From Mobula birostris (lineage: Eukaryota), in the NCBI RefSeq assembly GCF_030028105.1, contig NC_092384.1, positions 16,871,629 to 16,935,628 on the forward strand: a DNA stretch of 64,000 bases, in the 5' to 3' direction. The notes under the pieces are model-generated. The model ran no database searches and had not been told where the DNA came from. It saw nothing but the letters and a program-made list of their open reading frames with translations. Numbering within the stretch: position 1 is the stretch's first letter; each line of letters begins with the position of its first letter. This document shows positions 3,001 to 43,674 of the stretch, in pieces. A program made the translations under genes and the position numbers.

Positions 3001-3001
3001 G

Positions 3002-3190
3002 CATAACCATATAACCATATGTAACCATATAACAGTTACAGCACAGAAACAGGCCATCTCGGCCCTTCTATCGTGCCGAACTCTTACTCTCACCTAGTCC
3101 CACCGACCTGCACTCAGCCCATAACCCTCCACTACTTTCCTGTACATATATCTATCCAATTTAACTTTAAACGTCAACATCAAATCTATC
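3002..3190 (-). mobile_element. CR1-type LINE 3' end with (CCATATAA)-like tail
   Basis: cataaccatataaccatatgtaaccatataac is followed by acagcacagaaacaggcc, the reverse complement of the CR1 3' UTRs at 13720 and 38150. Confidence 0.55.
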
Positions 3191-7627: not shown

Positions 7628-8080
7628 ATCAGACAGTAAGAAGGAATCTGATAGGAGCGGACAGTGAACCCTGGAAGACATGGAAGGAGGAGGAGTACCA
7701 AGGGGAGGCGATGGGGAAATGAGGAGAAGAGAAGAGGTGAAAGGGAAACAGAATGAGGAATGGAAAAAAATAGAGAATGGAATGGTGGAGAGATCACCAA
7801 CAGCTGGAGAAATCGATGCTCATGCCTCCGGTTTTCCCACATTCCAAAGACGCACGGGTTAGGAGGTCAATTATATTTAAGATCAGTATAGTGCCAATGT
7901 ATGCTCAAGCTTGTAAAATTAACTTCCTTTGCGATTTTAGATATATATGAACCCCCGGGGTACTCCGATTTTTCCACATTCCAAAGAGGTACGGGTTAGG
8001 ATGTCAGTTGGTCACGTGGGTTTGTCTGAGCGGCATGGACTAGTTGCACCAGAAAGGCTTGTTAGTGCTATATCTCTTAT
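7628..8080. mobile_element. Penelope tail fragment (7628-7815) fused to a partly duplicated tRNA-type SINE remnant (7822-8080)
   Basis: Matches 30730-30915 and the SINE at 32429-32660 (cccacattccaaagacg..ggtcac..tatctct). Confidence 0.6.
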
Positions 8081-8102
8081 GCAAATCCATATCATATTCA
8101 TG

Positions 8103-8230
8103 CTAATCTCTCTGCTTTACCTGGGAATAGATAACGCGCTCCTCCGGTTGTCGATCTTTGCGAAAGCGTTTGCTGCGCTGTGGTTTACTGAAGCATAGGC
8201 AGTGGTGTGCTCAACCGGTGCTTGTTCAGC
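8103..8230 (-). pseudogene. Orphan terminal cytoplasmic exon of the V-C1 receptor family, 1-bp deletion relative to paralogue
   Basis: Intact acceptor tttttctaacag, phase 0. Reads AEQAPVEHTTAYASVNHSAANAFAKIDNRRSALSIPR* (stop 8117-8119). The ancestral frame continues FRKDRQPEERVIYSQVKQRD* (stop 8103-8105). Homologous to 34278-34415. Confidence 0.85.
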
Positions 8231-9064
8231 CTGTTAGAAAAACATATTTAATACAGCTAACTGAGACAGAGGTCAGTGTCATCATAAACTTAATCTGATT
8301 TGGAAAATCAAATCACAGAGAAGGTTTTAACGAATGGTTGGAATAGCGTTTTGTCTGCGCACAATGATACATCATACCGGATGCGTGATCTCAACCATTT
8401 CAGGCTGGAAGTCGCAATGTTTTCTTTAGATTTTCAAACGACCGCTTATAACAATCCTATGAGTAGGATGGAATTCTCATTTCGAGCCATCTCTTTTTTC
8501 ATCTCCCAAGTCCTATTCCTTACGTTTCTATAGGTTTTTTTTTTGCATGGGTATCGTCCGATGTTCCACCTCTTATGAATGCGTCCGAATGTTTAAATCA
8601 TTGGCCTGACCATACAGAAACTGCGTCCCTTATGTTAGCTAAGTTAAGGATATTGGAGCAAATGAGAAGTCCTGATGCTAAGTCTCGCTTAACTGAGGCA
8701 ACAAACACGGGAACAGCATTCCTGGGGCTCTCTTGATTTGATTGGTTTTGGTGGTATATCACTCAAATTACAGAGAGCAAATAGACGTACTAGTTACAGT
8801 AAATATTAAAATGGCATTTGTTTTGGCTCATATAACGGTATAACATTTCAGAGTAATAAAGCAATAGCAAAAGTTTAATCATAAATACTTCAGCAACTTA
8901 GATATTTCTCTAAAAAGCAGCCCTACATTCTGGAAACGTTACGAACGCTGGTAAGAGTTTTAATGCAGCTCTACTATAGTGAAATCAGTGATGTATGACT
9001 GCGTTAACTTGGTGAACTCAAAAGCTGCTTCAGTCGCTTCCTTTGCACTTAGCCTACTTCCTAG

Positions 9065-10796: not shown

Positions 10797-13756
10797 GGGC
10801 TGGGTGAAAATAAATGATGTTGAAAGTTCAAGCAAATCAGCTGATTTTGTGAGTTTGTGAGTGGTGGTAAAAATCTTCTGAGGTGTATATATTTCAATGC
10901 TAGGAGTATTGCTGGTAAGGCGGATGAGTTGAGGGCGTGGATTGATACGTGGAATTATGACGTTGTGGCAATTAGTGAGACTTGGCTACAGGAGGGGCAG
11001 GAATGGCAGCTTAATATTCCAGGATTCCGATGTTTCAGATGTGATCAAGGCAGAGGAATGAAAGGTGGGGGAGTAGCATTGCTTGTTAGGGAAAATATTA
11101 CAGCAGTGCTCAGGCAGGACAGATTAAAGGGCTTTCTACTGAGTCCTCGTGGGTGGAGCTGAGAAACAGGAAAGGTATGGCCACATTAGTGGGATTGTAT
11201 TACAGACCACCCAATAGTCAACGAGACTTCGAAGAGCAAATCTGCAGAGAGATAGCAGGCAACTGCAGGAAACATAAAGTTGTGGTGGTAGGGGATTTTA
11301 ATTTTCCATACATTGATTGGGACTCCCAAACTGTTAGGGGTCAAGATGGTTTAGAGTTTGTAAAATTAGTGCAGGTATGTTTTCTAAATCAATACATAGA
11401 GGGACCAACTAGAGGGGATGCAATATTGGATCTCCTGTTAGGAAACGAATTAGGGCAAGTGACAGAAGTCTGTGTAGGGGAGCAGTTTGGTTCAAGTGAT
11501 CATAACACCATTAGTTTCAATTTGATCATGGACAAGGATAGATCTGGTCCTAGGGTTGAGGTTCTGAACTGGAAGAAGGTCAAATTTGAAGAAATGAGAA
11601 AGGATCTAAAAAGCATGGATTGGGACAGGTTGTTCTCTGGCAAAAATGTGATTGGTAGGTGGGAAGCCTTCAAAGGGGAAATTTTGAGAGTGCAGAGTTT
11701 GTATGTTCCTGTCAGGATCAAAGGCAAATTGAATAGGAATAAGGAACCTTGGTTCTCAAGGGATATTGCAACTCTGATAAAGAAGAAGAGGGAGTTGTAT
11801 GAAATGTATAGGAAACAGGGAGTAAATCAGGTGCTTGAGGAGTATGAGAAGTGCAAGAACATACTTAAGAAAGTAATCAGGAGGGCTAAAAGAAGACATG
11901 AGGTTGCCTTGGCAGTCGAAGTGAAGGATAATCCAAAGAGCTTTTACAGGTATATTAAGAGCAAAAGGATTGTAAGGGATAAAGTTGGTCCTCTTGAAGA
12001 TCAGAGTGGTCGGCTATGTGCGGAACCAAAAGAAATGGGGGAGATCTTAAATAGGTTTCTTGCATCTGTATTTACTAAGGAAACTGGCATGAAGTCTATG
12101 GAATTGAGGGAATCAAGTAGTGAGATCATGGAAACTGTACAGATTGAAAAGAAGGAGGTGCGCTGTCTTGAGGGAAATTAAAGTGGATAAAACCCCGAGA
12201 CCTGACAGAGTGTTCCCTCGGACCTTGAAGGAGACTAGTGTTGAAATTGCGGGGGCCCTCACAGAAGTATTTAAAATGTCACTGTCTACGGCTGAGGTGC
12301 CGGAGGATTGGAGAGTGGCTCATGTTGTTCCGTTGTTTAAAAAAGGATCGAAAAGTAGTCCGGGAAATTATAGGTCGGTGAGTTTAACGTCGGTAGTAGG
12401 TAAGTTATTGGAGGGAGTACTAAGAGACAGAATCTACAAGCATTTGGATAGACAGGGACTTATTAGGGAGAGTCAACATGGCTTTGTGCGTGGTAGGTCA
12501 TGTTTGACCAATCTATTGGAATCTTTCGAGGAGGTTGCAGGAAAGTGGATGAAGGGAAGGCAGTGGATATTGTCTACATGATTTCAGTAAGGCCTTTGAC
12601 AAGGTCCCGCATAGGAGGTTAGTTAGGAAAATTCAGTCGCTAGGTATCCATGCAGAGGTGGTAAATTGGATTAGGCATTGACTCGATGGAAGAAGCCAGA
12701 GAGTGGTGATAGAGAATTGCTTCTCTGAGTGGAGGCCTGTGACTAGTGGTGTGCCACAGGGATCAGTGCTGGGTCCATTGTTATTTGTCATCTATATCAA
12801 TGATCCGGATGCTAATATGGTAAATTGGATCAGCAAGTTTGCTGATGATGCAACGATTGGAGGTGTAGTAGACAGTGAGGACGGTTTTCAGAGCCTGCAG
12901 AGGAACTTGGACCAGCTGGAAAAATGGGCTGAAAAACGGCAGATGGAGTTTAATGCTGACAAGTGTGAGATATTGCACGTTGGAAGAACAGACCAACGTA
13001 GAACATACAGGGTTAATGGTAAGGCACTGAGGAGTGCAGTGGAACATAGGGATCTGGGAATACAGATACAAAATTCCCTAAAAGTGTCGTCACAGGTAGA
13101 TAGGGTCGTAAAGAGAGCTTTTGGTACATTGGCCTTTATTAATCTAAGTATTGAGTATAAGAGCTGGAATGTTATAATGAGGTTGTATAAGGCATTGGTG
13201 AGGCCGAATCTGGAGTATTGTGTTCAGTTTTGGTCACCAAATTGCAGGAAGGATATAAATAAGGTTGAAAGAGTGCAGAGAAGGTTTACAAGGATGTTGT
13301 CAGGACCTGAGAAACTCAGTTACAGAGAAAGGTTGAATAGGTTAGGACATTATTCCCTGGAGCGTAGAAGAATGAGGAGAGATTTGATAGAGGTATATAA
13401 AAGTATGATGGGTATAGATAGAGTGAATGCAAGCAGGCTTTTTCCACTGAGGCAAGGGGAGAAAAAAAGCGGAGGACACGGGTTAAGGGTGAGGGGGGAA
13501 AAGTTTAAAGGGAACCTTAAGGTGGGCTTTTTCACACAGAGAGTGGTGGGAGCATGGAATGAGCTGCCAGATGAGGTGGTAAATGCAGGTTATTTTTTAA
13601 CATTTAAGAATAAATTGGGCAGATACATGGACGGGAGGTGTATGGAGGGATATGGTCCGTGTGCAGGTCAGTGGGACTAGGCAGTAAATGGTTCGGCACA
13701 GCCAAGAAGGGCCAAAAGGCCTGTTTCTGTGCTGTAGTTGCTATGGTTTCTATAGT
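10797..13756 (+). mobile_element. CR1-type LINE, near-complete degenerate ORF2 (APE endonuclease + RT)
   Basis: YFNARSI..ETWL, GDFN, SDHN (APE); [35 protein letters not shown] (RT). Absent from the paralogous site near 44845. Confidence 0.93.
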
Positions 13757-26645: not shown

Positions 26646-29600
26646 GCTTTGTGTTCTCGTCCTGTGCAGGTGCAGCCACACCACGTTCTGTAGCCACGTC
26701 TTGTCCTCGCCTAGATCCAGGGTCCGAGCCCGAGTCAAGACACATGTTCCGGGTCCATGTCCAGTCTCTGGCTCGGAGTCCAAGTCCAGGCTCCTAGTTC
26801 CCAGTTCCATGTTCTGCTTTCCCTTTCCTAGCCAAAGTCCCAACCCAAGACTGTGTTCTTGTCCCAGCTCCTAGTCTACATCCTGTCACGTCCCTAACTC
26901 TAGTTCTAGTCCTGTTTCTAGTACTTCATTGTCTGTGCCTTGCATTTGGGTCCGGGACCAGCGCCCTCCTTATGACAGAATGAGCACTATTATTTTAAAA
27001 TAACACGATCTTAACATGTTATTTAAATATATGCACGTAAAGCTTTAGAGTAAAAGATCCTGTGTTTGCATGGAATTACCAATCAATTCCGTTGTTCCTC
27101 GGAATATTTACAAAAATCCTTGAACATGTGAAATAATAATTGAAATAAAAGGAAACTACTCGGCTAATTCGGTGGGCCAGGCAGTGCGGGTGAAGGCGTG
27201 CGGGTGTTTACTGTTTTGAGCTGGAGACTCGGGATTGAGAGTGTAGAGGGAAGATGTGCAATATATAACTTTGAAAAGGAGGTGTACGACCGGTGATAGA
27301 TGGAACCAATCTCGTTGGATGGAATGGTGGAGTGTTTGCAAGTCGAGCGAGAAAAGTATGATCCAATTTGCTCATTGCGGAATCCTGTAAAAACATATAA
27401 TAACGGGTCGAGTTAAACATGTTTTATGAAGCTTGATTAAAGGATATATATTGGACAGTTAATGGGAGAGATCGTTATCATCGAAGAAAACGATACCGTG
27501 GGAGTAATGCTGCTCAGTCGGCAGTGCAAAGCGACCTTTATTTAAGATGTTTAGTGAAACGTATTTTGAGTGTAATTCATCCTCAGTGATTTGCCGAAGC
27601 ATTTTTAACCGAGATTTCGTCCTCTAATCCAGAAATAAACCAAAGTGAGAAGCTAAGGTTCAAACTTACGTCTGGTATTCAGAGAATGAGATATTGTTTA
27701 TCGACAAACGAATAGCATATCATTTATTGGATTGTTTGTTAGTGGAGGAGTGTTTCTAAATAGATTATAACAACTGAAAGCGATAGAACTGGAGGGTGGG
27801 GTTGGTGTGGAGGTGTCGTCCTAACAGCGTAGCAATTAGAGATGGCGCCCTCTCCAGGCCGTGACAGAACGCACTTGATTGGGATGATTCAGAGGAATTT
27901 ACAAATTTACAGATATTTAAAATCCCTGAAACCATTATCATTTATATTATTATTGTATTCATTTTCTATCTTCATTCGACTGTACTGAAATATTTTTTTC
28001 TGATAAATATAGTACACAGTATTAGAGGGGGCTTTTTTTGCGCAGGGCATTCTCCAGTGCGAGCAATAAAATGATATATTTGAAACGACGTTGAGCTGAG
28101 CTGAAACTGGATACGTCCTGAAAAGCACTTTGGAAAACATCACCAGCGCCTCTCACTTGCTTGAGGAATTAGTTGACTCTTGTGACTGCTCTTCAGAGAA
28201 ATAACAGACGGCTATTTATGTTTTTTTATGAGTAGATGAAAAAATGCATAAGAAAGATAAGAGTACAAAGATCCTGTCAACTACGAACAAGATATAACTG
28301 TGCATTTTTAATTGAAAGTAAATATCAGAGCAATATTAAAAAGTGGAGAAATCGACGAGATTTGAGATGTGAAGGGAAATCTGTCCCAGCCAGCATATCC
28401 AGCAGAACAGGACTGAGCAGCCCACTCAGTCTCCAGGCGTGTACGTTTTTATTATTTTTGCCAATCTCTCTGCATTACCGAAACTCTTTCAGAAAATAGG
28501 CTGTTGTTTGCATTATCAGACAGAGGATTTATTTCACTGCCGTGTTCCGTGTACCTACTCCCCGCCTTCCTTAGCCCCGCACCTTATCCACCAAACACGC
28601 TGACCTGATGAGCAACAATAATATATTACTATAACAGGATGCTCACGCTGTTGTCACATATACATCTACCTGAACCGGAATTAATGCGTCAATTTACTGA
28701 CTATTGCCCAAATAAATGCTGGGCATATAGCAGACTTATTTTGCTCCATCGGGCAATTGGAAAGATTAACCGCTGAGGAGCTCTGTCCAAAGCACCATAT
28801 TCTTCGAGAGTACACGTCGAAACACGTGATTCCTATAAATCTACTTTCCAACGTCTACAATTTTCAGTCAGATGTTATGATTAGGCTAAACCTGATTTCC
28901 TTTAATGTGACCAGGTGCGTATCTCCTTGTTTCAATGTGGGCTGGGACAGGTACACTGGTGGCGATGCATTTCATAGTGCAGTTGCATTTTACAGTTAAT
29001 GTTGAGCAACAATCCGTGAATGTATACGAAACAGAAGAATACTGATTTTTTTTTATCATTCGACATTTACTGATCAATATTCAAACACAGAGGTGTTATC
29101 GTGAGAAAATGTTGCGATTTTTTCACATCTTTTAATCTATATTTCCCTCGGTTGAACTTTGACATAAGTGAGCAAGAATAACTGTTCAGTTGACGGTTTT
29201 TACCCTGAAAACAAAGTTCTCTGCCTGGTGGTGACAAACCTCTCTTTTTTTTTCATCCTCTGAGGACTGTAGAGGGTGGGGCGGTACTTTAGGCAAAGTA
29301 GTTTTATTTCCTGTAATGATCGGGGAATGTTCAATGGAGATAATGACTGGGCAGGAGAGACAGGCGGAACGGCTTATTCCTAATCTTATTCTAAATTCCT
29401 TACTTTTATTCTTACCAGTGATAATCGCTTCCAACAAATCGAAGATGAAATTGATCCCTTATCTTCCTAATTTATACATGTGATAGATTAACAATCTTTA
29501 TCTGGAGGCAAGAAATGAAACGAATAAATGCCTCGGCCATGCACTCATTGATAGTCTATAGCTCTAAACTGCAGTTGGATTCTCAGCTTCACAGTTTCTT

Positions 29601-30439
29601 TGATGTATTTACGTCTGCGTACAATGCATGTTTGTTTTGCTGTTTGGATGCTGGTGTGTTCTTAGAATCGGGAATCTGCAGAGCAGCGTAAGTCAGTTTG
29701 TCAGCTCCATTTCCTGCAGTCTGCGAAAATATTTGAAAATCAGGGGTTAATTGAGAATCCATTGAGTTGAACAAATTTAATCAAGAATTGTAATATAAAT
29801 TAGTGATGCACTCATAAGTTATCAATTTTAGATTTCTGCCGTTTTACACAAAGTTTATGTCAACATTGTTTCAAAATTTCCCTTTTTGATTTATTTGGTA
29901 TTTCAACTCCAAGAGCCTGTGCTGTCGCACTGAACAATGAGCGTTTCTTTCCTTACTGAAAATGAACTTCAACAACATCGAGTTGGGAGAGTAGATAACT
30001 CCTTGAAGCAGCAGGTATAGTACAAAATATTTCGCTAACTCAATATACAAGAGCATTGTTGTGTTATGTTTGTCTGATTGCCGCAAACTGTTTAGTCTAC
30101 AGATCTTACGGTGTTTCCTCAGTCACACCTGCCAACAGAATTCCAAATACACACAGACACTGTCATCAGTGGATACCGCACAACTGATAGATTGAACGCT
30201 GGCACTTTGTTCATTCATGCCACATGGTTACTGTTTTGTCACAGTTCGGCATTTCCATGAATAACACCAATGTTCGGTTGGTTCAGTGTTTCTCGGTTAT
30301 TATCAGATATTCGAGTTCATTGTGGAGCTGATAATGAGCATTGGAAAGGATGGCTATTCCTAGTTTCATGCTTTTTAGTGTTTCCACATTACATATGAAA
30401 TTGAATTCATAAAAGCGAGCGTAAAAAAGATAATCTCAA

Positions 30440-30930
30440 TGGATTCTGCAGATGCTGGAAATCTTGAGGAATGCAAAAGAAATGTTATGTAATTCATTCG
30501 GTAAGGCAACATGTATGAAGGTAAATACGCTGTTGATGTTTCTGTCTGAAATGCTTTAGCAGGACACCGAAAGGAGGGGGTCAGAAGCTAGAATAGGAAG
30601 GTGGGGAATGAATACAAGATGGCAGGTGATATGAGAAACCAGCTGGGAAAGAACGTGTGTTGATGATGGGGATGGAATAACTTAGAAGCTGGGAGGTGAT
30701 GAGTGGAAAAGGAATAGGGTGCAAGAAGAAATCTGATAGGAGGAGACAGTGGACCCCGGAGGAAATGGAAGAAAGAAGGGTACCAGTGGAGGTGATGGGC
30801 AGATGAGGAGAAGAGAAGCGGTGAAAGGGAGCCATAGTTGGGAATGGAGAAAAAAATAGAAAGGGAATGATGAAATAGGCATTAAAAATTAGAGAGATCA
30901 ATGTTCATGCTTTCAGGTTGGAGTCCACCC
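30440..30930 (-). mobile_element. Penelope-like tail fragment
   Basis: ggattctgcagatgctggaaatc and the following purine-rich tract, as at 2510 and 4725. Confidence 0.6.
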
Positions 30931-31039
30931 AGATGGAAGAAAAATGTGATGATATTTCGAGGGTGTTTAGTCGTAAATGGTACAGTGAAAAAGTTCAGAT
31001 CAGGTCCGTAAAATTAATCTCCTTTGGAATATCGTTTAC

Positions 31040-32415
31040 GTACATGTTGGAATCGATTGTTAGGAATGAGATTACGGAGTACCTGGAGGCACATGACAAG
31101 TTAGGCCAAAGGCAGCATGGCTTTCTGAAAGGAAAATCCTGCCTGTCTAACCTACCGCAATTTTTTGAGGAAATTGCAAGCAGGGTAGACAAAGGAGATG
31201 TAGTAGATGTGGTACACTTGGATTTTCAGAAGGCCTTTGTCAAGGTGCCGCACATGAAGCTGCTTAGCAAGATAAGAGCGTATGGAATTACAGAGGCGTT
31301 ACTAACATGGGTGAACATTGCTGATTGGTAGAAAACAGAAAGTGGAATAAAGGGATCCTATTTTGGCTGACTACCGGTTACCAGCGGAGTTACACAGGGG
31401 TTGGTGTTGCGACCGCTCCTTTTTATGATGTATGTCAATGATTTTGACTATGGGATTAATGGATTTTGGCTAAATTTGCCGATGATACAAAGATAGTTGG
31501 AGGGGTGGATAGTGCTGAGGAAACAGAGCTGCAGAGAGACTTAGATAGTTTAGGGGAAAGGGCAAAGAAGTGGCAAATAAAATACAATGTTGGAAAGTGT
31601 ATGTTCATGCACATCGGTGGAAGAAATAAACGTGCAGACGATTATTTAGATGGGAAAATAATTCAAAATGCCGTGATGCAAAGGGAATTGTGAGTCCTTA
31701 TGCAGGATATCTGAAAGGTTAACCTCCATGTTAAATCGGTTGTGAAGAAGGTGAATGCAAAGTTGGAATTCATTTCTCGAGGTATAGAATATAAGAACAG
31801 GGTGTGATGTTGAGGCTCTATAAGGCACTCGTGAGACCACACTTGGAGTATTGTTTGCAGTTTTGGGCTCTTTATTTTGGAAGGGATATGCTGACATCGG
31901 AGAGGGTTTAGAGAAGATTCTCGAGAATGATTCCAGGAACGAAAGGGTTACCGTATGAGGAACGCCTGGCAGCTCTTGGGATGTATTCCTTGGAGTTCAG
32001 GAGAATTGGGGGCGGGGGGATGGGGATCTCATAGAAACATTCCGAATATTAAAAGGCTTGAACAGATTAGATGTGGCAAATTTATTTCCATGCTAGGGGA
32101 GTCTAGGACAAGAGGGCACGACTTCAGGATTGAAGGACGTCCATTTAGAAAGAGATGCGGAGAAATTACTTTAGTCAGAGGGTAGTAAATATGTGGAATT
32201 TGTTGCAATGGGCGACTGTGGAGGCCAAGTCATTAGGTGCATTTAAGGCAGGGATACAGGGATAGATACATTTTTGATTAGCCAGGGCATCAAAGGGTAT
32301 GGGGAGAAGGCAGCGGAGTGGGGATGACTGGAAGAATTGGATCAGCCCATGATTGAATGACGGAGCAGACACGATGTGCCGAATGGCCTACTTCTGCTTC
32401 TATATTTTATGGTAT
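31040..32415 (+). mobile_element. CR1 LINE, 5'-truncated
   Basis: LGQRQHGFLKGKSCL..DFQKAF; AKFADDTK; 3' UTR similar to 9900-10115. Confidence 0.88.
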
Positions 32416-32428
32416 TGTATATCTGTTG

Positions 32429-32660
32429 TGCGTGGCTCGGTAGCGTAGCGGCTAGGTTAACACTATTACAGCAGCGGTGATCGAGGTTTAATTCCCGTAA
32501 CCGACGAAATGGTGTGTTTCTATGTTTTCCCATGACCGTATGACTTTTTCTGGGCGCTCAAGTTACCTCCCACGTTCCAAACACTTACGGGTGAGTCGGC
32601 TAATTAGTCACATGGCTGTAATTGGGTGGCACGAACTAGCTGGGTTGTACGGCTCTGTTA
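32429..32660 (+). mobile_element. tRNA-derived SINE (V-SINE-like), split near its 3' end by the Tc1 element; tail resumes at 34253-34263
   Basis: A-box-like ggtagcgtagcgg, B-box-like ggtttaattcc, core cctcccacgttccaaa..ggctaattagtcacatgg; the uninterrupted paralogous 3' end is at 8000-8080. Confidence 0.65.
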
Positions 32661-34252
32661 CAGTGGCGTGCAAATTTTGGGCACCCCGGTCAAAATTTCT
32701 GTTACTGTGAATAGTTAAGTGAGTAGCAGTGGAACTGATTTCCAAAAGTCATAAAGTTAAAGATGAAACATTCTTTTCAACATTTTAAGCAAAATTAGTG
32801 CATTTTTGGTCCAATTTTAGAGTGAAAGAAAAGGAAAGGTGCACCATGCAAATGTTTACGGACCCCAAGAGATTTGAGCTCTTAGGTAACTTTTACCAAG
32901 GTCTCAGACCTTAATTAGGATGTTAGGGCTATGGCTTGTTCACAGTTACCGTTAGGAAAGACCAGGTGATGCAAATTTTAAAGCTTTATTAATATCCTGA
33001 TTGCTGAAACCTTGTCCCAACAATCAGAAGACATCAGCTCCTCTAAGCGGTTGCCTAGCACTCTGAAAATTAAAATAAATGATGCGCACAAAGCAGGAGA
33101 AAGCTAGCAAAGCGTTTTCAGGTAGCCGTTTCCTCAGTTCATAATGTAATTAAGAAATGGTAGTTAACAGGAACGGTGGAGGTCAAGTTGAGGTCTGGAA
33201 GACCAAGAAAACTTTCCTAGAGAAGTGCTTGTCGGATTACTAGAAAGGCAAATCAAAACCCCCGTTTGACTGTAAAAGACCTTCAGGAAGAATTAGCAGA
33301 CTCTGGAGTGGTGGTGCACTGTTCTACTGTGCAGCGACACCTGCACAAATATGACCTTCATGGAAGAGTCATCAAAAGAAAACCTTTCCTGCATCCTCAT
33401 TACAAAATTCAGCGTCAGAAGTTTGCAGAGGAACATCTAAACAAGCCTGATGCATTTTGCAAACAGGTCCTGTGGACTAATGAAGTTAAAATAGAACTTT
33501 TTGGCCGCAATGAACAAAGGTATGTTTGGAGAAGAAAGTGTGCAGAATTTCATGAAATTAAAACACCTCTCCAACTGTTAAGCACGGGGGTGGATCGATC
33601 ATTATGCTTTTGGCTTGTGTTGCAGCCAGTGGCACGAGGAGCAGTTCACTGTTAGAGGGAAGAATGAATTCAATTAAATACCAGCAAATTCTGGAAGCAA
33701 ACATCACACCGTCTGTAAAAAAGCTGAAGATGAAAAGAGGATGGATAATGATCCTGAACACACCTCAAAATCCACAATGAACTACCTTAAGAGGCGCAAG
33801 TTGAAGGTTTTGCCATGGCCCTCAGAGTCCCCCGACCTGAATATCATCGAAAATCTGTGGATAGACCGGAAAAGAGCAATGCATACAAGACGGCCCAGAA
33901 ATCTCACAGAACTAGAAGCCTTTTGCAAGGAAGAATGGGCGAAAATCCCTCAAACAAGAATTGAAAGGCTCTTAGCTGGCTACAGAAAGCATTTACAAGC
34001 TGTGATACTTGCCAAAGGGGGTGTTACTATGTACTGACCATGCAGGGTGCCCAAAATTTTGCTTCGGGCCCTGTTCCTTTTTTTGTTAATTTGAAATTGT
34101 AAAAGAAGGAAATAAAAAAAGTAATCCTGCTTAAAATATTAAAGAAATGTGTGCACCTTTAACTTTATGCCTTTTGGAAATCAGGTCATCTTTTACTCGA
34201 TCACAGTAACAGAAATTTTGACCAGGTGTGCCCAAACACTTGCATGTCATAG
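32661..34252 (+). mobile_element. Tc1-family DNA transposon, frameshifted transposase
   Basis: Left end TA|CAGTGGCGTGCAAATTTTGGGCACCCC; degenerate right TIR gtgtgcccaaacacttgcatgtcatag. DDE-region motifs VLWTNEVK, DNDPEH, PWPSESPDLNIIENLW. Confidence 0.92.
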
Positions 34253-34277
34253 TTTATCTCTAAAGCAAATTCATATA

Positions 34278-34415
34278 TTATACATGGCAATCTCTCTGCT
34301 TTACCTGAGAATAGATAATGCATTCTTCTTCTTGTCGATCTTTGCGAAATCCTTTACTTTCCCTCATATTTAGTGAAACATGGGGAGTGGTGTCATCAAC
34401 CGCAGCTTGGTCAGC
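34278..34415 (-). CDS. Exon 6: terminal cytoplasmic exon with ITIM IIYSQV (34302-34319)
   Basis: Acceptor tttttccaacag; ADQAAVDDTTPHVSLNMRESKGFRKDRQEEECIIYSQVKQRDCHV*. Confidence 0.82.
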   Translation of the reverse strand, partial: ADQAAVDDTTPHVSLNMRESKGFRKDRQEEECIIYSQVKQRDCHV

Positions 34416-37400
34416 CTGTTGGAAAAACACACTTAATACTGATAACTGATACAAGGTCAGTGATCATGAACTGTTTGGTTTGGAATATCCGCGTGTTATG
34501 ATATTGTCCGTATATCATTCCGGAGGTGGGATACCAAACCCATTTCAGGCTGGAAGTCACTACGTTTACTTTAGATTTCCAAGCAACCACTTAAAACCAT
34601 CCTTTCAATCGGATCGGTTTCTCAGGTCTGGCCATTTCTTTTGTTTTCATCTCTTCTGTTATATCCCTTACACGCTTCTAAGTTTTGTGGACGGGCTTTA
34701 TCCGATGCGGTTTTCTTAGCACCCCGTCAAATTACTATAATTATTGGCATGACGCGATTTCGTCCCCACGGTGCATTTAGAGCCTGTGACTCTTGAAACT
34801 CGCATTATCTAGGTTAAGGATATTGGAACAAGTGACAAGACCTGTTGTACGGTTCCAGCCTGGCTTATCTGAGGTAGCAAATACGGGAGGGGCATCTTGC
34901 CAGCTGTTGAGCTGATTGGTGTTGCTGGTGTATCAATTAAATTACAATCGAAATAAGTAGAGCTGTTGGACATGCCCGTTACAGTAAATGGTTAAAATAG
35001 CATTTGTTTCGGCTAAAATAATGACAGAGCATTCCAGAGCAATAAAGCGACGGTAAAAAAAATCTTAAACGTTCCAGCTTCATCTTAGATATTACTCTCA
35101 GAAGCGGTCCTTCATTTCGGGAAGTGCTACAAATGCTGATAGAAGTTTCAACGGAGTTCTACTATAATGAAGCCAGTGGGATATGACAACCTTGCTTTGG
35201 TGATGTGAAAAGTTGTTGCAGCAAATATCGTTACGTAAAAGTAAAAATATGCGCTACAATTGGGAAGGTAATTAATGAACACAAAAAAGTTGTTTCCCGT
35301 GTAGACAGATGGGTATATAACCGATAAAGGTTTAATATATGCTATCAGGAGGATCCAGGTGGGACACATTTAATAACATTGAACTGCTGGAACTTTGAAG
35401 TGAAACAGACAAATAAGACACACAGTAGATCAGGAAACACGAGAGGAAAGAGAAACAATCAACGTTTACGTTGCTTTCCGGGGAGAGGTATTCAACCTGA
35501 AAGGACAGCGTTTTCTCTTTCCTAAAACGGCGTTAGAGGTTCTTAATTTCTGGATTCAATCCAAAATGGGAGATGACAATACATTTATATGTTGCAGGCA
35601 TTTCTTTCAAAATTGAGGATAATAATCCTTCAGCGTAGCCTCCTGGAGTAGAAGGCGCCTGGTGGAATTTCCTTAACATATGGGTATCATTGTGCACCAG
35701 ATACTACACGGTTTATTGGAAGCATATTCGATTCCATTGCAGGTCATGCACTGTTCTGTGGATCTTTGTTGGGAATCGGTGTTAAAAACTCCATATGACT
35801 TTCCAAAGCAAAATTTCGTTGCATTTTCAATTTTGCTTGCTGTGCGTTCAAATCAGATGTAACATATATTGCGAAATGCGTGTACTGTATTTTTCCATTG
35901 TGCACGACACAGTGATTCTCGTAAGCCGACATTTGACATCTAAAACATCTCAGTCTTAGATTTGTATTTAATTATTCGTCAAACGAAGCGTGATTAACAG
36001 CATAACTTCCATTAGTATACACTACCGTTCATCTTAATGCAACCGGTTATGAACTGATGTAGAATCCTGAAAGACGATAGATTCAGATTCAATAGGAATA
36101 TTCAAATCTACCTTGGATAAAACTGCAAAATAAAGAGGTGTCAGGTAGTTTTATTGTTCCCTACTGCGTTTCAAATGTTAGAACAAAATAAATCTTAGGC
36201 GGAAGGACAAGATGGCGGTATGCCGTGCGTGCGCAGCTCTCCGGTGAAAAATGATATTGTATCTGTCAAATAGGGGCCGTGGACAATTCTGATTTGATGG
36301 AGAATGGACGTGAAAGCACAGAGGAACATTCGCTGCTGTCGTTACTGTGTGGTCGTGAATCTTTCGGAGGGTAGGCCTCAAAATCCCCGACCTTGTCTGC
36401 TTTTGGCGACCGAGAAGGAGGTCGAATCGTTCGGGCAGATGTGGCGCTCAGTACTCGGTATCGTAGAGTTGATCAGAGCTCGAAGTTTTCGGATGACTCA
36501 GAGTCGGATTGTGGTCGGCATGGCAGGGAGAGTTTTTCTTCGTTCTCTCGTCTGCGTGAGATGTGGGACATTTGAGAAACCTTGTACTTTACTGTGCTCA
36601 CGGACTTCTTCATCAAGTTATGGTATTGTTGCACTGCTTGTAACTATATGCTATAATTATGTGGTTTTGTCAGTTTTTTCAGTCTGGGTTTGTCCTGTGT
36701 TTTGTGATATCACACCGGAGGAAATAATGTATCATTTCTTAATGCATGCATTACTAAATGACAATAAAAGAGGAATACTTGTCTTCATAATCATAAATTT
36801 GTAATATTTAAGGTACGTTTGACATTAGGCCGGTAATTTTGACATTGATAGTGGGTAAGTTATTGGAGGGAGTACTAAGAGACAGAATCTACAAGCATTT
36901 GGATAGACGGGGACATATTAGGGAGAGTCAAAATGGCTTTGTGCATGGTAGGTCATGTTTGACCAATCTATTGGAGTTTTTCGAGGAGTTTACCAGGAAA
37001 GTGGATGAAGGGAAGGCAGTGGATGTTGTCTAAAGCCTTTGACAGGGTCCCGCATGGGAGGTTAGTTCGGAAAATTCAGTCGCTAGGTATACATGGAGAG
37101 GTGGTAAATTGGATTAGACATTGGCTCAATGGAAGAGGCCAAAGACCAGTAGTAGGAAATTGCTTCTCAGAGTGGAGACCTGTGACTCGTGGTGCGCCAC
37201 AGGGATCAGTGCTGGGTCCAGTGTTATTTGTCATCTGTATCAATTATTTGGATGATAATGTGCTAAATTGGATCAGCAAATTTGCTGATTATACAAAGAT
37301 TTGAGATGTACTAGACAGCGAGGAAGGTTCTCGGAGCCTGCAGAGGGACTTGGACCAGCCGGAAAAATGGGCTGAAAAATGGCAGATAGAGTTTAATACA

Positions 37401-40400
37401 GACAAGTGTGAGGTATTGCACTTTGGAAGGACAAACCAAGGTAGAACATACAGGGTTAATGGTAAGGCACTGAGGCGTGCAGTAGAACAGAGGGATCTTG
37501 GAATACAGATACAAAATTCCCTAAAAGTGGCGTCACAGGTAGATAGGGTCGTAAAGAGAGCTTTTGGTACATTGGCCTTTATTAATCAAAGTATTGAGTA
37601 TCAAAGCTGGAATGTTATGATGAGGTTGTATAAGGCACTGGTAAGGCCGAATTTGGAGTATTGTGTTCAGTTTTGGTTACCAAATTACAGGAAGGATATT
37701 AATAAGGTTGAAAGAGTGCAGAAAAGGTTTACAAGGATGTTGCCGGGACTTGAGAAACTGAGTTACAGACAAAGGTTGAATAGATTAGGACTTTATTCCC
37801 TAGAGCGTAGAAGAATGAGTGGTGATTTGATAGAGGTATATAAAATTATGATGGGTATAGATAGGGTGAATGCAAGCAGGCTTTTCCCACTGAGGCTAGG
37901 GGAGAAAAAAACCAGAGGACATGGGTTAAGGTTGAAGGGGGAAAAGTTTAAAGGGGGGCTTCTTCACACAGAGAGTGGTGGGAGTGTGGAATGAGCTGCC
38001 AGACGAGGTGGTAAATGCGGGTTCTTTTTTAACACTTAAGAATAAATGGGACAGATACATGGGTGGGAAGTGTATGGAGGGATGTGGTCCGTGCGCAGGT
38101 CAGTGGGACTAGGCAGAAAATAATTTGGCAGAGCCAAGAAGGGCCAAAGGCCTGTTTCTGTGCTGTAGTTTTTCTATGGTTTCTGTGGTTTTCTATATCT
38201 CTGCTATACCTATACGCCGATCTCAAAGAAGTCAAGCCACTTCACTTACCAGCTCTTCACTCTGACATCTGTCCAAAGAGCTTGTGTTAATCCCTTAAGA
38301 AAAATAAAAGAAATTATTTACATTGTAAAAGTTGGACATTATTCATTTGATACAAATAGAATTCATCGCGTAAGAGGAACTGCTGAAGGTACGGATCTTT
38401 CAGAAAGCATTTTGTGGTATTAGTTGTCTTAATACAGTGCATCAACATCATGGCACTATGCTCAAGAGTCTACGACATTTAAAGAAGCCGTAAAGTGATA
38501 ATAGTATATGAGTTGCTGTACTACATCTAAATACTGTCGTTAAAATGGAAATTAAAATCAATGAGACATGCATGAGATCGTCAATGTTCTTTAAACAGTG
38601 ACAGTAAGCATAGACCTATGCCAAGCTGCTTACGCTTCAAAGTATAGACCTGCCATTGTATCCAAAACGACATTTGAAGTATTCCAAAGGGATATAACGG
38701 CATTTATGAACAAGATACAGCATATAGATACAGCGAGTGGACTGGTGGAATTATTGTATATTAAGATCCAGCTTGTGTTGTGCCTGATGATTATCAATGT
38801 AATCAGGTTCGACCATGTCAATCCCTGTCTAATCATGCTCTAATGACATTTATTCTTTTTGAAGTTAAGTATCTTTCACACATCTATTTTGCACGAATAG
38901 AGGTGATATTTCTCAGCGATCAGGTTTCTTACCGTGCAATCTCTTTAACTTGACTTTCACCAAAACTATTATCAGAGCTAAAATTGCCGATCCGCCGAGC
39001 GCACATGCCAGAATGAATTTAGTATCAGCGCCTTGTGGATCAACAGGGGGAAAAGAAGAAACTGTGAAGCACTTATGCATCTAAAAAATGCACACATGAG
39101 AATCAATAATGCAAAATATCTAATAGGCTCCTTTCAAATCTCACTGCGCAACATCGGAAAATATGTCATAAGACAGGAAATGCAAATTCCCACCTTTGTT
39201 ATATTTCGATGAGATATAGAGTTTACGTTTTGCTTTCCACAATTTTGGCAAATGTTCACAAGTTTGCTACCTTGCAAATACTGCACGAATTCAATTTCTT
39301 AATTCGCCCTACACGATTTAAACTAACGGAATAACACAAGTTTTTGAACACCTTTCACGTTCAATACTCACTATCAATTACTACGCTTCAAAATTAGCCA
39401 TTCTTCCGTCTTTGGGTAGCTGTTCAGTTACTGTTCTTAACAAGGTCACATTGACCCCACCACAATGACTTGTAAGCGCTTCCATCTTACATTGAGCAGA
39501 AAAGATTCTGAACATGCTGAAATTCAGAATAACACATAAAATCCTGGAAGAACTCAGCCGATCAGGCAGATCTAAAATGTCGACGTTTAAGGCCGAGATC
39601 CAACATCATGACTTCATCAAGACACCATCTTACCTTGGATGTAGCTGAAACTGGCAGACAACGTGAGGGAGCCATGCGACACCAGGCAGGTGTAAATATC
39701 TTTTCCCCAAGCAGACTGCGTAATTTCCAATAAACTAAATACTTCGTACAAGCCGTCCACGTTCCGGTTTGTCACATTTTGTATTCCAGTGTGAATTTGC
39801 TTGTTATTTCTTTGCCAAATGATTTCTAATTTCTCCGGGTAGAAGGCAGCCGTTTTACAAAGGAGCTTTCGAGGAGACGAAAACCCTCCAACAGGAACAA
39901 TTTCCACTGGAGTTGGAGGAGCTTGAATCAAAACGTAGTTATATTGAGTATTTTCGATCCATTTCAGTACAGATAATTTCGCTTATCTCCCTTCCAACTA
40001 GCCTGATGCTCAACTATCAAATCAGTTACCCGCCAGTATTAACCAGTATTTAATAAATTCTTCCAATTTCACGTTCTGCTTATTGTTACTCAACCATACA
40101 CACACACTCCGATGCAAAATACGCCGTGACGCCTCACCAGTGCTTTATAAAGTCTGAATATTACATTCTTGCTTTTATATTCTAGTCCTCTTGAAATGAA
40201 TGCGATCATCGGATTTGCCTTCCTGGCCACAGACCCAACCTGCAAATTAACCTGTATGGAATACTGCACACGGACTCGCAAGTCCCTTACCACCTCAATG
40301 TTTTTTTGTGTTTTCTCTCCAGTTGGAAAATATTCAAAACTTTCACACCCTCCACCAAACTGCATGCTCACACACTTCTCGAAACTGTATTCCATCTGCC

Positions 40401-43400
40401 ATTTCTTTGCCTGTCCTCCTAATCTGTCTCAGTCTTTCTGTAGCCTCTCTATTTCCTAAAACTACCTGCCCATCCACCTCTCTTCATATCGTCTGCAAGC
40501 TTTGCAACAAAGCCATCAATTCCACCATCCATATCATTGACATATAACATTAAACGAATCGGTCACTGCACAGACCCCTGTGGAAGACAGTTCGTCACGG
40601 GCAGCCAACCAGAAAATTCTCCCTTTATTTCCATTCTTTGTCACTTACCAACCAGCCACTGCTTTATCCACCCTAGTATCTTTCTTGTTATACTTTGGGC
40701 TCGTAGCTTGTTTAACAGCCTTGTGTGTGGTACCTTGTCAAAGGCCTTCTGAAAATCCAAGTACACAACAACCGATTCTGCCTACCTTTATCTATCCTGC
40801 TTTTTATTCCTTCAAATAATTCAATCAGATTTGTCTGGCGAGAGTTTCCTTTGAGGATATCATGCTGACAATGGCGTGTTTTATTATGTGTCTCCAAGTA
40901 ATCTAATACCTGATCCTTAATGATGGACTCCAACATCTTGACAACCAGTGAGGTCAGACTGACTGGCCTATAGATTCCCTTTTCTGCCTCTCTGCTTTCT
41001 TGAAGAGTGGAGTGACATTTGTAATTTTCCAGTCTTCCAGAACCATTCCAGAATCGTAATTCTTGAAAGACCTTTACTAATGCCTCCACAATCTATCAGC
41101 AACTTTTATCAGAATCATGGTATGTACATCATCTGGTCTAGGTGAATTACCTACTTTCAGAACTTTCAGTTTCCCAAGAACTTGCACTCCAATTATGTCT
41201 CTAGTTTTGCCGTTGTTCAAGATAGACTCTCGGAATAAACCGGGATAATATAGACTAGTTGGTATTACAGTGAAGTGGGTAATTTATTGGAAGATATTCG
41301 AAAGAATAGGATAGATAAATATTGAGATAGACTGGGTTTGTTTGGGAATAAGCAACATTATTTTGTGCAATGTAGGCTCTGTCTAACCAATCTTAATGAA
41401 CTTTTCGAGCGGGTTACCATGGATCTTGATGAAGGATAACAGTGGTCAATATGGATTTTAGCAAGAGCTTTGGAAAAGTTCTGCATGGGGGTGGTGGGCT
41501 GATCAAGTACGTTCGCTTGGCATTCAGGATGAAGGAGTAAGTTGTGTCTAACGTTGGCTTCGCGGGAGAAGCCAGTGTATGGTAGTAGATGGTTGTTCTT
41601 TGAACGAAGGCCTTTGACTGGTGGTGTGCCGCATGGCGATCAAAGCTTGCAGCGGGTTATGGACCAGGTCTAAAAATGCGTTGAAAATGGCAGATAGGAT
41701 TTAATGAAGGTAATTGTAAGCTGTTGTACTTTAAGAAGACAAACCATTCTCCGATACACATCGTCAACGAGACTGGGATTGACGAATGCGGTAAAAAATG
41801 ATCTTGGAATACAGATTGATAATTCATTGGAAATGGAGCAAAAGGCAGTGGTTTCGTAAAGATAACCTTTGTCATATTGGACTTCACATATCAGAGTATT
41901 GAGTGTAAAAGTTGGAATGTTATGCTGAAGTTGCATTAGACGTCAGTGAGAACAAATTTGGTGTATTGTTCACAGTTCTGGTTAATTATCTGCAGGAAAG
42001 TTATAAATATGATTGAATGAGTACAAAACAACTTACAAGATGTGGCATGAATTTGAGGACATGGATTATGAGGAAAGGTTTAACAGGTAAGGATTTTTTG
42101 AATGATTCGTAAGAGAACGAGCGACCATTTGATCGAGGTATACAAAATTATGAGGGATGTAGATATATGGTGTATACAAGCCTGCATCATCCACTGAGGT
42201 TGGGTGAGAGTGTAATTGGAATTCATAGCTTCAGAGTGAAATGAAAAGTATTAAAGGCGAACCTGGTGGGAAACGTCTTTACTCGGCCGGTGATGCTATT
42301 GTGGAGTGAGCTGCCAGAGGAGGTGTTTGTGACCGACTCTCTACCCGTTACAGTACTATCCAATCGTATCAAAATTCACCTTAACCCTGAGAGGTCCATA
42401 TTTCTCACAATTTATATGGTGAAAGAAGTATAGATTTTGCTAACCCTGCATGACAAAAGTTGGAATGACATTTTGCAGTGCATGTGATAGATGTTGGAAT
42501 TAACTCATTTGGAGCTGGGTATTATTCCTGTCTACTTGTTGATGCGGAATTGGAGCATTGTGCTGCTGCATGGAGACCCTTTGACAGAGATTACTCTATT
42601 TAAGTATTAATATTCTGCGTCCTCTGTGCTGAGGAATCGAGTTATCCAACTCCAGCCATTCACATTAATATTAATATTATTTCAGCCTCTTGCTTGCAAC
42701 ACAATCCTAACCTTGCTTGAAAATTAAAGTAATTCGTTGTATTCAAAGTACCTTTGTGATAATGAGGGTGAAGTCCTAAGGTATCACTAACCTTGGACAT
42801 TCGGTTTAATTGGGAGATAGCTGATGAGCAGGGCTGGACGAATAGCAGTGGGGAAAGAACCGAGGAAATACGATACGATAAACAGAATCAACTTCATTAT
42901 GCGCCTAATAGTTGCTACACGAAATGTGATTAATTCTTCTGTTCTTTATAATTCTGAATTGAGAATCCCTGGACTGGGGTATATTTTAACGCGGGGAACA
43001 AATGTATTCTCGCCGCTTGTTTAGTCAAATAGAAACATTTATTATCATCCTCATCACTAAGTTTGATGTAAAATGCACAGAGCCGAAAATCTCCAAACAG
43101 CCACACTCACCGAACACAGTGAGGCTGGTGCCACAGCTACTCACGAAAAATTGCTCCTGAAACTTTACTTCACAGTAATATAGTCCAGAGTCGCTGAATT
43201 TGACATTTCGGAGTACAAGCGTTCCTCTTCCCCTTTCTACAGTAAATTGTCTTCTGCTGTCCCTTTCTAAAAATGCCTTCTCGCCTTGCCTCCGCCAACG
43301 AATGTCAACAGTATCTTGTGATAGTGGAAATTTGCAGAACATCGTGACATTCGCACCACCCGGGACGTTCAGGTCCCGCGGGAATTGAGATACTTCGTTC

Positions 43401-43674
43401 GCCGTTACTTTGACGACTGCCGGAAAAATAAGCAAGAGTATTAACAACAGTTAAACACAGTGAATTAACAAAAACTGATGACGTAAGTCACTGGACATCT
43501 AACAGCGAAAAACGGCCGAATAGATGAAAAACGGTAACCGAATATGCTGCAGGCACCCAGGGTTAAATATTATGAAATAGAATATTCAATTCGGAAACGG
43601 CGTGTATAAATCAGCATACTTAGCCAAGTAATAACCAGAAGTGTCATGTACGAAACCGTAAACTTCTCCGCCAT
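34278..43674 (-). CDS. Intact 6-exon type I membrane receptor, 309 aa: leader-V-C1-TM-cytoplasmic ITIM (SIRP-/NKp30-/PRARP-like architecture; exact family not assignable by eye)
   Basis: join(43620-43674, 43111-43416, 39634-39921, 38933-39031, 38250-38293, 34278-34415) = 930 nt. All introns are GT-AG with phases 1,1,1,1,0, and the frame is open from ATG to TAA. Confidence 0.85.
36185..36800 (+). mobile_element. Probable non-autonomous retroelement (UTR-derived) in intron 5
   Basis: Starts AAGATGGCG, is CpG-rich, and ends AATAAAAGAGG..cataatcataa; no RT motifs. Confidence 0.4.
36845..38195 (+). mobile_element. CR1 LINE, 5'-truncated, in intron 5; same subfamily as 12390-13756
   Basis: RESQNGFVHGRSCLTNLLEFFEE; [10 protein letters not shown]; LEYCVQFWLP; very similar to 12400-13750. 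Confidence 0.92.
38250..38293 (-). CDS. Exon 5: 44-bp cytoplasmic exon
   Basis: Acceptor cttttatttttcttaag, donor G|GTAAGT; (G)INTSSLDRCQSEEL; its phase 1-to-0 boundaries link the TM exon to the ITIM exon. Confidence 0.8.
38933..39031 (-). CDS. Exon 4: transmembrane exon
   Basis: Long polypyrimidine acceptor ending cacaag, donor G|GTAAGA; ADTK-FILACALGGSAILALIIVLV-KVKLKRLH; uncharged TM followed by a basic stop-transfer cluster. Confidence 0.88.
39634..39921 (-). CDS. Exon 3: C1-set Ig domain
   Basis: LLC..FYP..W..DGLY..YTCLVSH C1 signature; acceptor gattcaag, donor G|GTAAGA. Confidence 0.93.
40040..41190 (-). mobile_element. CR1 RT fragment in intron 2
   Basis: IYRPVSLTSLV..; DLRVRVQ..VNLQV..FISRGLEYKS. 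Confidence 0.8.
41220..42330 (+). mobile_element. Old, diverged CR1 fragment in intron 2
   Basis: Nucleotide similarity to 12400-13600 (ggatcttggaatacag.., ttggaatgttatg.., gtggagtgagctgccagagg). Confidence 0.7.
43111..43416 (-). CDS. Exon 2: V-set Ig domain with germline J-like G strand
   Basis: EVSQFP..TMFC..RW..TLVLRNVKFSDSGLYYC..CGTSLTVF; acceptor ttttccggcag, donor G|GTGAGT. Confidence 0.93.
43620..43674 (-). CDS. Exon 1: leader peptide
   Basis: AAGATGG Kozak context; MAEKFTVSYMTLLVITWL; donor A|GTATGC, phase 1; 203-bp intron to the V exon. Confidence 0.8.

Follow-up and report, generated by a model that had tools for sequence, protein, structure and literature searches.

Does the genome of Mobula birostris hold an intact receptor gene that joins V and C1 domains in the manner of antigen-receptor chains, does so without rearrangement, and carries an inhibitory tail? 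The question is raised by a 64,000-nucleotide stretch of M. birostris DNA (NCBI RefSeq assembly GCF_030028105.1, contig NC_092384.1, positions 16,871,629 to 16,935,628 of the forward strand), referred to here as the window; positions below are numbered from its first nucleotide. An earlier note, made from the sequence of the window, had described a six-exon receptor at positions 34278 to 43674. Our analysis led to a revised reading, which we consider probable: an intact, transcribed gene of seven exons encoding a 344-residue inhibitory-type receptor composed of a V domain with a J-like strand, a single C1 domain, a transmembrane (TM) segment, and a disordered tail of ~100 residues, the gene being one copy in a family whose nearest characterized protein is SIRP-alpha.

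Exon structure and reading frame

The receptor gene is located on the minus strand, where it spans positions 43674 to 29589 of the window and comprises seven exons with GT-AG borders at every intron. Joining these exons affords an intact 1035-nt open reading frame encoding a protein of 344 residues. Exon 1 (43620 to 43674) begins with the ATG at 43674 and encodes most of the signal peptide, the leader being split in phase 1 at the donor A/GTATGC. Exon 2 (43111 to 43416; acceptor CAG/, donor G/GTGAGT) encodes both the V-set domain and its J-like G strand (Pfam V-set, 5.8e-13), and exon 3 (39634 to 39921) encodes the single C1-set domain (Pfam C1-set, 1.1e-13), with the sequence Y-T-C-L-V-S-H in the F strand and a weak AAG acceptor at 39922. 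Exon 4 (38933 to 39031) provides a short stalk, an uncharged TM helix, and basic stop-transfer residues. The cytoplasmic tail is encoded by the last three exons: a 44-nt exon 5 (38250 to 38293), which passes from phase 1 to phase 0 in agreement with relatives; exon 6 (34305 to 34415), ending in ...IIYSQ at the donor CAG/GTAAAG (TCT CAG/GTAAAG); and exon 7 (29589 to 29720), which contains 43 codons followed by TGA, encodes the motifs LTYAAL and ALYADV, and is preceded by the acceptor TTTTCGCAG/. The intron phases across the first six exons (1, 1, 1, 1, 0) are consistent with their joining. Exon 7 was found by tblastn with relatives, at 77 to 98% identity, and a poly(A) signal, AATAAA, lies beyond it at about 29409.

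The first six exons and their minus-strand orientation were correctly recognized in the earlier note: all borders are GT-AG, and the joined exons, with exon 6 read through into intron 6, give exactly the 309 residues ending in IIYSQVKQRDCHV that it had described. The 3' end that it placed at 34278 has to be moved, since exon 6 stops at 34305 and the seventh exon, at 29720 to 29589, makes the gene ~4.7 kb longer. The segment thereby returned to intron 6 (34278 to 34304) would encode VKQRDCHV and a stop codon if read through; it is not found in spliced contigs and is absent from the RefSeq models of both Mobula species discussed below (P0242 and P0162).

The predicted M. birostris product XP_072135222.1 (P0242; named "NCR3LG1-like") is identical to the seven-exon translation at 339 of 339 aligned residues, including the 18 residues of exon 1 (18/18) and all of exon 7. 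The sole difference is an acceptor located 15 nt further into the C1 exon, by which P0242 lacks the first five residues of the C1 domain. The M. hypostoma orthologue, XP_062923615.1 (P0162), is identical at 331 of 344 positions (96%). Between the two species, 1 of 102 residues differs in the V domain, 3 of 96 in the C1 domain, and seven of about 95 residues in the tail. Both species keep an intact frame and the same unusual residues. The gene is thus already predicted by RefSeq in two Mobula species.

A second copy of the gene is present on an unplaced M. birostris scaffold of 33.7 kb, where one predicted product (P0176) differs by one residue and another (P0243) also by one residue, beyond a different N-terminal start. 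Two explanations fit this scaffold twin: an unmerged haplotype and a very recent duplication.

Transcription and splicing

Contigs from four public runs (X1 to X4) were aligned directly to positions 34250 to 40000, a range that contains exons 3 to 6. Two spliced joints, 38292>38932 and 34414>38249, both GT..AG on the minus strand, were present in all four runs. Contigs from X1, X3, and X4 matched positions 34414 to 34305 without any mismatch and ended exactly at 34305; they extended a further 141 to 179 letters that were not placed on 34304 to 34250. Sampled words from the V exon were present in X1 at a proportion of 0.97. Spliced transcripts were therefore found in four runs, and these come from two labeled organisms. 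Exons 4, 5, and 6 are spliced together, and the donor of exon 6 is used, because the tails of relatives continue into exon 7, the RNA contigs stop at 34305, and the seven-exon frame coincides with the RefSeq product. Together, these results indicate that the gene is real and transcribed and that its frame is intact; from its sequence, the product is predicted to be a type I membrane receptor.

Tyrosine motifs of the cytoplasmic tail

The earlier note had assigned the inhibitory function to an immunoreceptor tyrosine-based inhibitory motif (ITIM), IIYSQV, at the end of exon 6. This motif is an artifact: splicing takes place at the donor following ...IIYSQ, and the codon for the motif's valine opens intron 6. 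The mRNA spliced across exons 6 and 7 encodes IIYSQT, which is not an ITIM. The tyrosine motifs that matter are located in the exon that had been missed. A motif scan identified LTYAAL, a canonical ITIM, at residues 310 to 315 (Y312), and ALYADV 23 residues further on (Y335), both encoded by exon 7. With LTYAAL, the mature mRNA encodes a cytoplasmic (S/I/V/L)-x-Y-x-x-(I/V/L) sequence, and the TM segment has no charged residue; both are defining features of an ITIM receptor. The proposal that a V-C1-TM receptor with an uncharged TM carries an inhibitory-type tail was therefore borne out, by the TM exon and by the motifs of exon 7. The arrangement follows that of relatives recovered by HMMER, whose tails continue past IIYSQ or VYAQ as T-x-x-x-G-A-D-K-L-T-Y-A-A-L ... 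Y-A-D-V. Members of the family typically have four tyrosines, whose arrangement is reminiscent of SIRP-alpha; in P0153, a count by eye gave intervals of 23, 13, and 23 residues.

We infer from this design that the receptor would act in four steps. The V domain would bind a ligand on a cell surface or on a pathogen, Src-family kinases would phosphorylate Y312 (LTYAAL) and Y335 (YADV), the doubly phosphorylated pair would recruit the tandem SH2 domains of SHP-1 or SHP-2, and these phosphatases would damp activating signals in the same cell.

V domain and germline joining

In an AlphaFold2 model of P0242 (see below), the V domain is short: its cysteines are separated by 53 residues, and C' and C'' strands are lacking. 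The V exon runs without interruption through the G strand to its GT donor, and V and J are not separate segments. The G strand reads S-x-G-T-x-L-x-V in this gene and in its orthologue, the family consensus being G-x-G-S/T-x-L-x-V. A recombination signal sequence (RSS) check of the V exon region found no nonamer. A heptamer-like CACTGTG is present on the coding strand at 43115 to 43121, within the codons for L-T-V-F, and CACAGTG matches at 43456, in intron 1; the former was rejected as a true RSS heptamer, since no nonamer lies nearby, and probably occurs by chance. The gene is germline-joined and non-rearranging, as the earlier note had held.

The bulge of the G strand contains an unpaired cysteine (S-S-C-G-T; codon 113, at ~43137), which is also found in the M. 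hypostoma orthologues and in the paralogue P0166. It could mediate the formation of a disulfide-linked dimer.

Evidence against an intact receptor

Several observations weigh against a functional V-C1 receptor with a typical inhibitory tail. Two tail motifs deviate from the family pattern. ALYADV is neither a canonical ITIM nor a canonical immunoreceptor tyrosine-based switch motif (ITSM). The latter has T at position -2, a residue present in the paralogues P0151 and P0153; close paralogues have the canonical ITSM T-L/F-Y-A/S-D-V at the distal site. The membrane-proximal tyrosine of relatives is replaced by histidine, the sequence T-A/E-Y-A-x-L having become T-P-H-V-S-L in this gene and in the M. 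hypostoma orthologue. In the V domain, the first glycine of the G-x-G bulge and the second tryptophan of the WW pair of the family are lost, again in both Mobula species. The acceptors of the C1 and TM exons are weak AAG sites (39906 to 39921 and 39032 to 39034). The label "RNA" of the runs is a guess, and the runs include some intronic contigs. Neighboring copies of the gene are dead, which counts against function, and across X1 to X4 no RNA contig with the gene's own sequence covers the C1 exon.

Some of these observations would suit a transcribed copy that is becoming a pseudogene, the frame still being open and the function lost. The missing tail tyrosine, J-motif glycine, and family-conserved tryptophan would be early signs of decay, as would the weak acceptors; the gene also lies in a birth-and-death cluster with two dead neighbors, and transposons have inserted into introns 5 and 6. 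However, two species retain the 344-codon frame and all seven exons intact, together with the same unusual residues and only 1 of 102 V residues changed, and spliced transcripts occur in four runs from two labeled organisms. We consider it highly improbable that the copy has lost its function.

Inclusion of the C1 exon

Because the C1 exon is in phase 1 at both ends, skipping it preserves the frame. A second acceptor, CAG/, lies 15 nt inside the exon and would start it at 39906. The outer acceptor is used in the M. hypostoma RefSeq model and the inner one in both M. birostris models that contain the domain (P0242 and P0243), which lack the residues A-P-P-T-P. RefSeq predicts an isoform X2 for the scaffold twin (P0176; 247 of 248 residues identical) in which the C1 exon is skipped entirely, and the family model P0232 from elephant shark also lacks C1. 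An ordinary TAG acceptor, with no internal AG, is seen in the decayed copy at the left edge of the window. Alternative splicing of the C1 exon would give three forms of the receptor (full, minus five residues, and skipped), and the choice among them may set the distance of the V domain from the membrane.

The RNA contigs are ambiguous at this exon. The body of the exon (39583 to 39892) is absent from the X1 contigs, although low-depth intron contigs are found on both flanks; contigs may drop stretches that are common to paralogues, and the gap in X1 does not prove absence. In X2 and X4, contigs do cover the C1 exon (39662 to 39906) with 3% differences and carry the substitutions I155V, H164R, Q168E, and N169S, to which X2 adds I154L and A191P. 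The substituted residues match the paralogue P0151/P0003, so that these contigs come from another gene. By the same contigs, this sister gene, which encodes 346 residues and has a canonical ITSM, is expressed with its C1 exon.

These data bear on an alternative in which the main product is the C1-less isoform, with V joined directly to the TM exon, giving a single-V receptor of the NKp30 shape with an inhibitory tail and leaving the V-C1 form minor or vanishing. The RefSeq isoform of the near-identical scaffold copy and its elephant-shark counterpart, the phase 1-1 exon with its weak AAG acceptor, the presence in X1 of the V exon (0.97) and of spliced exons 4 to 7 without the C1 body, and the paralogous origin of the X2 and X4 contigs would all fit this possibility. 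Against it stand three RefSeq products that contain C1 (P0242, P0243, and P0162) and the integrity of the exon itself, which differs from its orthologue at 3 of 96 residues; moreover, contigs lose variants where paralogues share words, and the gap in X1 proves nothing. We regard a predominantly C1-less product as unlikely, and the inclusion of C1 in the transcripts of this gene is predicted from its sequence. The exon chain proposed in the earlier note is accordingly supported by RNA at the joints of exons 4, 5, and 6, but the inclusion of C1 is not supported by contigs, and a C1-less isoform is predicted.

A multigene family of cartilaginous fish

When the C1 exon was compared with 1.84 billion proteins by HMMER, a set of proteins with a single V and a single C1 domain was recovered. 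Profile and single-sequence searches returned 81 clusters at E<=1e-15, all from cartilaginous fish; the cluster search requires shared five-residue words, so that the lack of bony-vertebrate matches is no proof of absence. The family is present in rays (Mobula, Hypanus, Hemitrygon, Pristis, and Narcine), skates (Amblyraja and Leucoraja), sharks (Heterodontus, Heptranchias, Scyliorhinus, Chiloscyllium, Hemiscyllium, Carcharodon, and Mustelus), and the elephant shark. With a hidden Markov model (HMM) of the family C1 domain, members scored 82 to 150 bits, and the rest of the best 150 proteins of the exhaustive HMMER search, together with coelacanth SIRP-like proteins, scored at most 53 bits, in line with the restriction to cartilaginous fish. 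P0242 reached 133 bits with the C1 HMM and 138 bits with the V HMM of the family, within the range of members for C1. According to the C1 HMM, 103 of 107 family proteins have a single C1 domain.

The gene follows the seven-exon layout of the family, in which leader, V, C1, and TM exons are followed by three cytoplasmic exons and the tail closes with KLTYAxL...YAxV. Tails with an ITIM or ITSM were found in 45 of the 107 family proteins, and 16 had a charged TM and no motif (for example, an R and a short tail). Such a mixture of inhibitory tails and charged-TM short tails is typical of paired inhibitory and activating receptors. Judged from these motifs, the role best supported for the gene product would be an inhibitory one, within a family of paired receptors.

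A maximum-likelihood tree of the V and C1 ectodomains was built within the family, with coelacanth SIRP-like proteins as outside rows. It resolved several old subfamilies and recent lineage-specific bursts. The gene grouped with its scaffold twin, then with P0162, and then with P0241 of M. hypostoma (100/76, 100/93, and 100/99), in a Mobula-specific clade nested in a 20-row expansion of stingrays and mantas. By these sequence comparisons, the gene is one recent copy in a multigene family found only in cartilaginous fish.

Database names are scattered over the family and include SIRP-alpha-like, SIRP-beta-1-like, NCR3LG1-like, tapasin-related-like, Ig (immunoglobulin) lambda-like, PD-L1-like, CD276, TCR (T cell receptor) beta-like, and MHC (major histocompatibility complex) class II-like. 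Literature searches combining SIRP with shark or cartilaginous-fish terms returned nothing on the family, and a prior description in a subscription journal is possible. The suggestion that the gene belongs to a poorly described, lineage-specific family was thus upheld as regards its restricted distribution and the lack of a paper found; the gene itself is already among the RefSeq predictions for two Mobula species.

Fold and comparison with known receptors

The AlphaFold2 model of P0242, built with 61 family sequences, had pLDDT (predicted local distance difference test) values of 85 to 94 for the V domain and 77 to 90 for the C1 domain, a TM helix at residues 215 to 244, and a disordered tail. 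Among solved structures, Foldseek ranked Ig light chains and TCR beta first (about 2e-15; 18 to 24% identity), in agreement with the claim that the ectodomain has the layout of an antigen-receptor chain. Among reviewed proteins, bovine and human SIRP-alpha came first (7.7e-17 and 1.3e-16), followed by small margins by PD-L1, TAPBPL, B7-H6, CD276, and TCR beta, which are also the names scattered over the family. Searching the PDB with the family profile gave 9dmx (UrIg2) as the second-best match (1.5e-33), 2wng (SIRP-alpha) at 1.9e-27 with V and C1 aligned in one stretch, and Ig light chains at 1e-22 to 1e-25. PDB searches with single exons, or with V or C1 only, did not discriminate, being dominated by multidomain chains (titin, contactin, and Ig heavy chains). 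From the model and these profile searches, the ectodomain appears antigen-receptor-shaped, with SIRP-alpha the nearest characterized whole protein.

SIRP-alpha has the tail motifs ITYADL, TEYASI, and LTYADL, and the tyrosines of an SHP-2-binding peptide are 24 residues apart (PMC5413580, PMC5589908). The Mobula receptor shares with SIRP-alpha an N-terminal V domain with a J-like G strand, a C1-set domain, an uncharged TM, and an ordered series of Y-x-x-L/V/I tail motifs. The spacing of the tyrosine pair (23 residues versus 24) and the motifs themselves (LTYAAL...YADV versus ITYADL...TEYASI and LTYADL) are alike, and the family has short-tailed members with a charged TM, as in SIRP-beta. The two receptors differ in that SIRP-alpha has two C1 domains and the Mobula gene has one C1 exon between V and TM; its V domain is also shorter. 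The distinction from SIRP-alpha drawn in the earlier note is therefore correct as to the number of C1 domains but was overdrawn, SIRP-alpha being the best reviewed match and the tail being laid out as in SIRP-alpha.

These likenesses raise the question of whether the family is the true orthologue of SIRP-alpha in cartilaginous fish, that is, a CD47-binding SIRP proper. Such an identity would account for the best reviewed structural match, for the profile alignment to 2wng over V and C1, for the many members named SIRP-alpha-like or SIRP-beta-like by NCBI, and for the ordered tail tyrosines and the division into inhibitory and charged-TM forms, as in SIRP-alpha and SIRP-beta. It is contradicted by the presence of one C1 domain rather than two in nearly all members, by the short V domain with 53 residues between cysteines and no C' or C'' strands, and by the small Foldseek margins over PD-L1, TAPBPL, B7-H6, and TCR beta. 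In addition, the C1 domains of coelacanth SIRP-like proteins score only 48 to 49 bits with the family HMM, compared with 52 bits for unrelated multi-C1 proteins, and in the tree the coelacanth proteins fall outside the family, at the end of a very long branch. A word-indexed search seeded with one coelacanth SIRP-like protein returned coelacanth proteins only. We find it very unlikely that the family is SIRP proper. The receptor resembles SIRP-alpha in domains, motifs, and predicted fold, a likeness that does not establish orthology. As no clear orthology to a characterized gene emerged, SIRP-alpha being only the nearest, the reading of the earlier note stands in this respect.

Ig light chains and TCR beta share with the receptor a V-J-C1 ectodomain and the C1-set signature Y-x-C-x-V-x-H in the F strand. 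Unlike these chains, the Mobula gene has V and J in one exon, does not rearrange, and has no RSS nonamer, and its product has its own TM and a tyrosine-motif tail instead of signaling via CD3 or CD79. The chicken PRARP proteins of Fu et al. (2019), a study cited in PMC10751288, are reportedly non-rearranging V-C1-TM receptors of the Ig superfamily, discussed as antigen-receptor relics.

Passages of PMC12227049 describe two non-rearranging Ig-like genes of elasmobranchs: UrIg, secreted and with three C domains after its VJ domain, and UrIg2, with nine or more C domains. Like the present gene, both occur in cartilaginous fish and have a single-exon VJ and a split leader followed by C1-type domains. 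The gene described here differs in having one C1 domain, not at least three C1-type domains, and an ITIM tail; multi-C1 proteins reach about 45 bits per domain with the family C1 HMM. Non-rearranging VJ-C1 genes (UrIg, NKp30, and PRARP) are discussed in passages of PMC12227049 and of PMC10751288, a paper on the MHC of cartilaginous fish, and the V-C1 family is unmentioned in those passages. NKp30 (NCR3) resembles the Mobula gene in that its VJ-type V domain does not rearrange; the isoform predicted to skip C1 would likewise have one domain, and the elephant-shark model lacking C1 is named NCR3-like by NCBI. NKp30 differs in lacking a C1 exon and in having a charged TM and a short tail; it was not among the 60 best-scoring PDB chains for the V exon or for the family V-domain profile.

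Neighboring copies and transposons

The two decayed paralogues that the earlier note placed beside the gene are both real. The first (5 to 1775, minus strand) belongs to another subfamily, with P0199 and P0210 as its nearest relatives, and runs off the edge of the window. Its V exon (1775 to 1467) is 72 to 79% identical to those of P0199, P0210, and P0209 and has an in-frame stop codon in the YYC motif; its C1 exon (287 to 5) is frameshifted. The second (6993 to 8230, minus strand) is a truncated, tail-only copy, in which the frame of the exon 6-like sequence (8230 to 8100) is broken and the exon 7-like sequence (7133 to 6993) contains a stop codon and has lost the distal tyrosine. It lies within a segmental duplication in which positions 3322 to 9033 match 27042 to 35221, the 3' end of the receptor gene. 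The interval from 8.2 to 29.5 kb of the window yielded no V, C1, or TM exon. Combining the left-edge V and C1 exons with the tail exons at 7 to 8 kb into one gene was rejected, since their order is wrong for the minus strand and the tail copy is a partial duplication of the 3' end.

Introns 5 and 6 contain transposon sequences on the plus strand. A Tc1/mariner transposase remnant occupies positions 33266 to 34037 of intron 6 (Pfam HTH_Tnp_Tc3_2, 1.5e-15; DDE_3, 7.2e-10). A fragment of a long interspersed nuclear element (LINE), at 36826 to 38184 of intron 5, is 89% identical to a copy at 12371 to 13751, which matches RVT_1 (8.4e-14). In all four runs, the LINE sequence of intron 5 (36170 to 38281) was covered by RNA contigs at depths of thousands to tens of thousands, unrelated to the receptor gene; this coverage points to LINE copies that are highly transcribed or highly repeated in the samples. 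N-terminal extensions similar to the transposon-derived open reading frames at 2806 to 3015 and 5097 to 5213 occur in the RefSeq models P0049 and P0199, which belong to the neighboring subfamily and probably start wrongly inside a repeat.

Implications

C1-set domains are known almost exclusively from adaptive-immunity molecules and SIRPs. A large and old family of non-rearranging V(J)-C1 receptors therefore bears on the origins of antigen receptors and of SIRPs, the more so as its hosts are the oldest jawed vertebrates. One may go further and suppose that the single-C1 family represents a sister or ancestral form of SIRP that preceded the duplication of C1, a non-rearranging survivor related to the V(J)-C1 precursor from which antigen receptors came, and that regulated skipping of the C1 exon could switch a copy between the antigen-receptor and NKp30 shapes. 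We think this quite unlikely. The family is also relevant to how birth-and-death turnover shapes systems of paired inhibitory and activating receptors.

The names currently borne by family members in databases (B7-H6-like, SIRP-alpha-like, IgL-like, and tapasin-related-like) are unreliable. A single copy adds little by itself; the value of the M. birostris gene lies in its corrected model, in the warning that it gives about naming, and possibly in an optional C1 exon.

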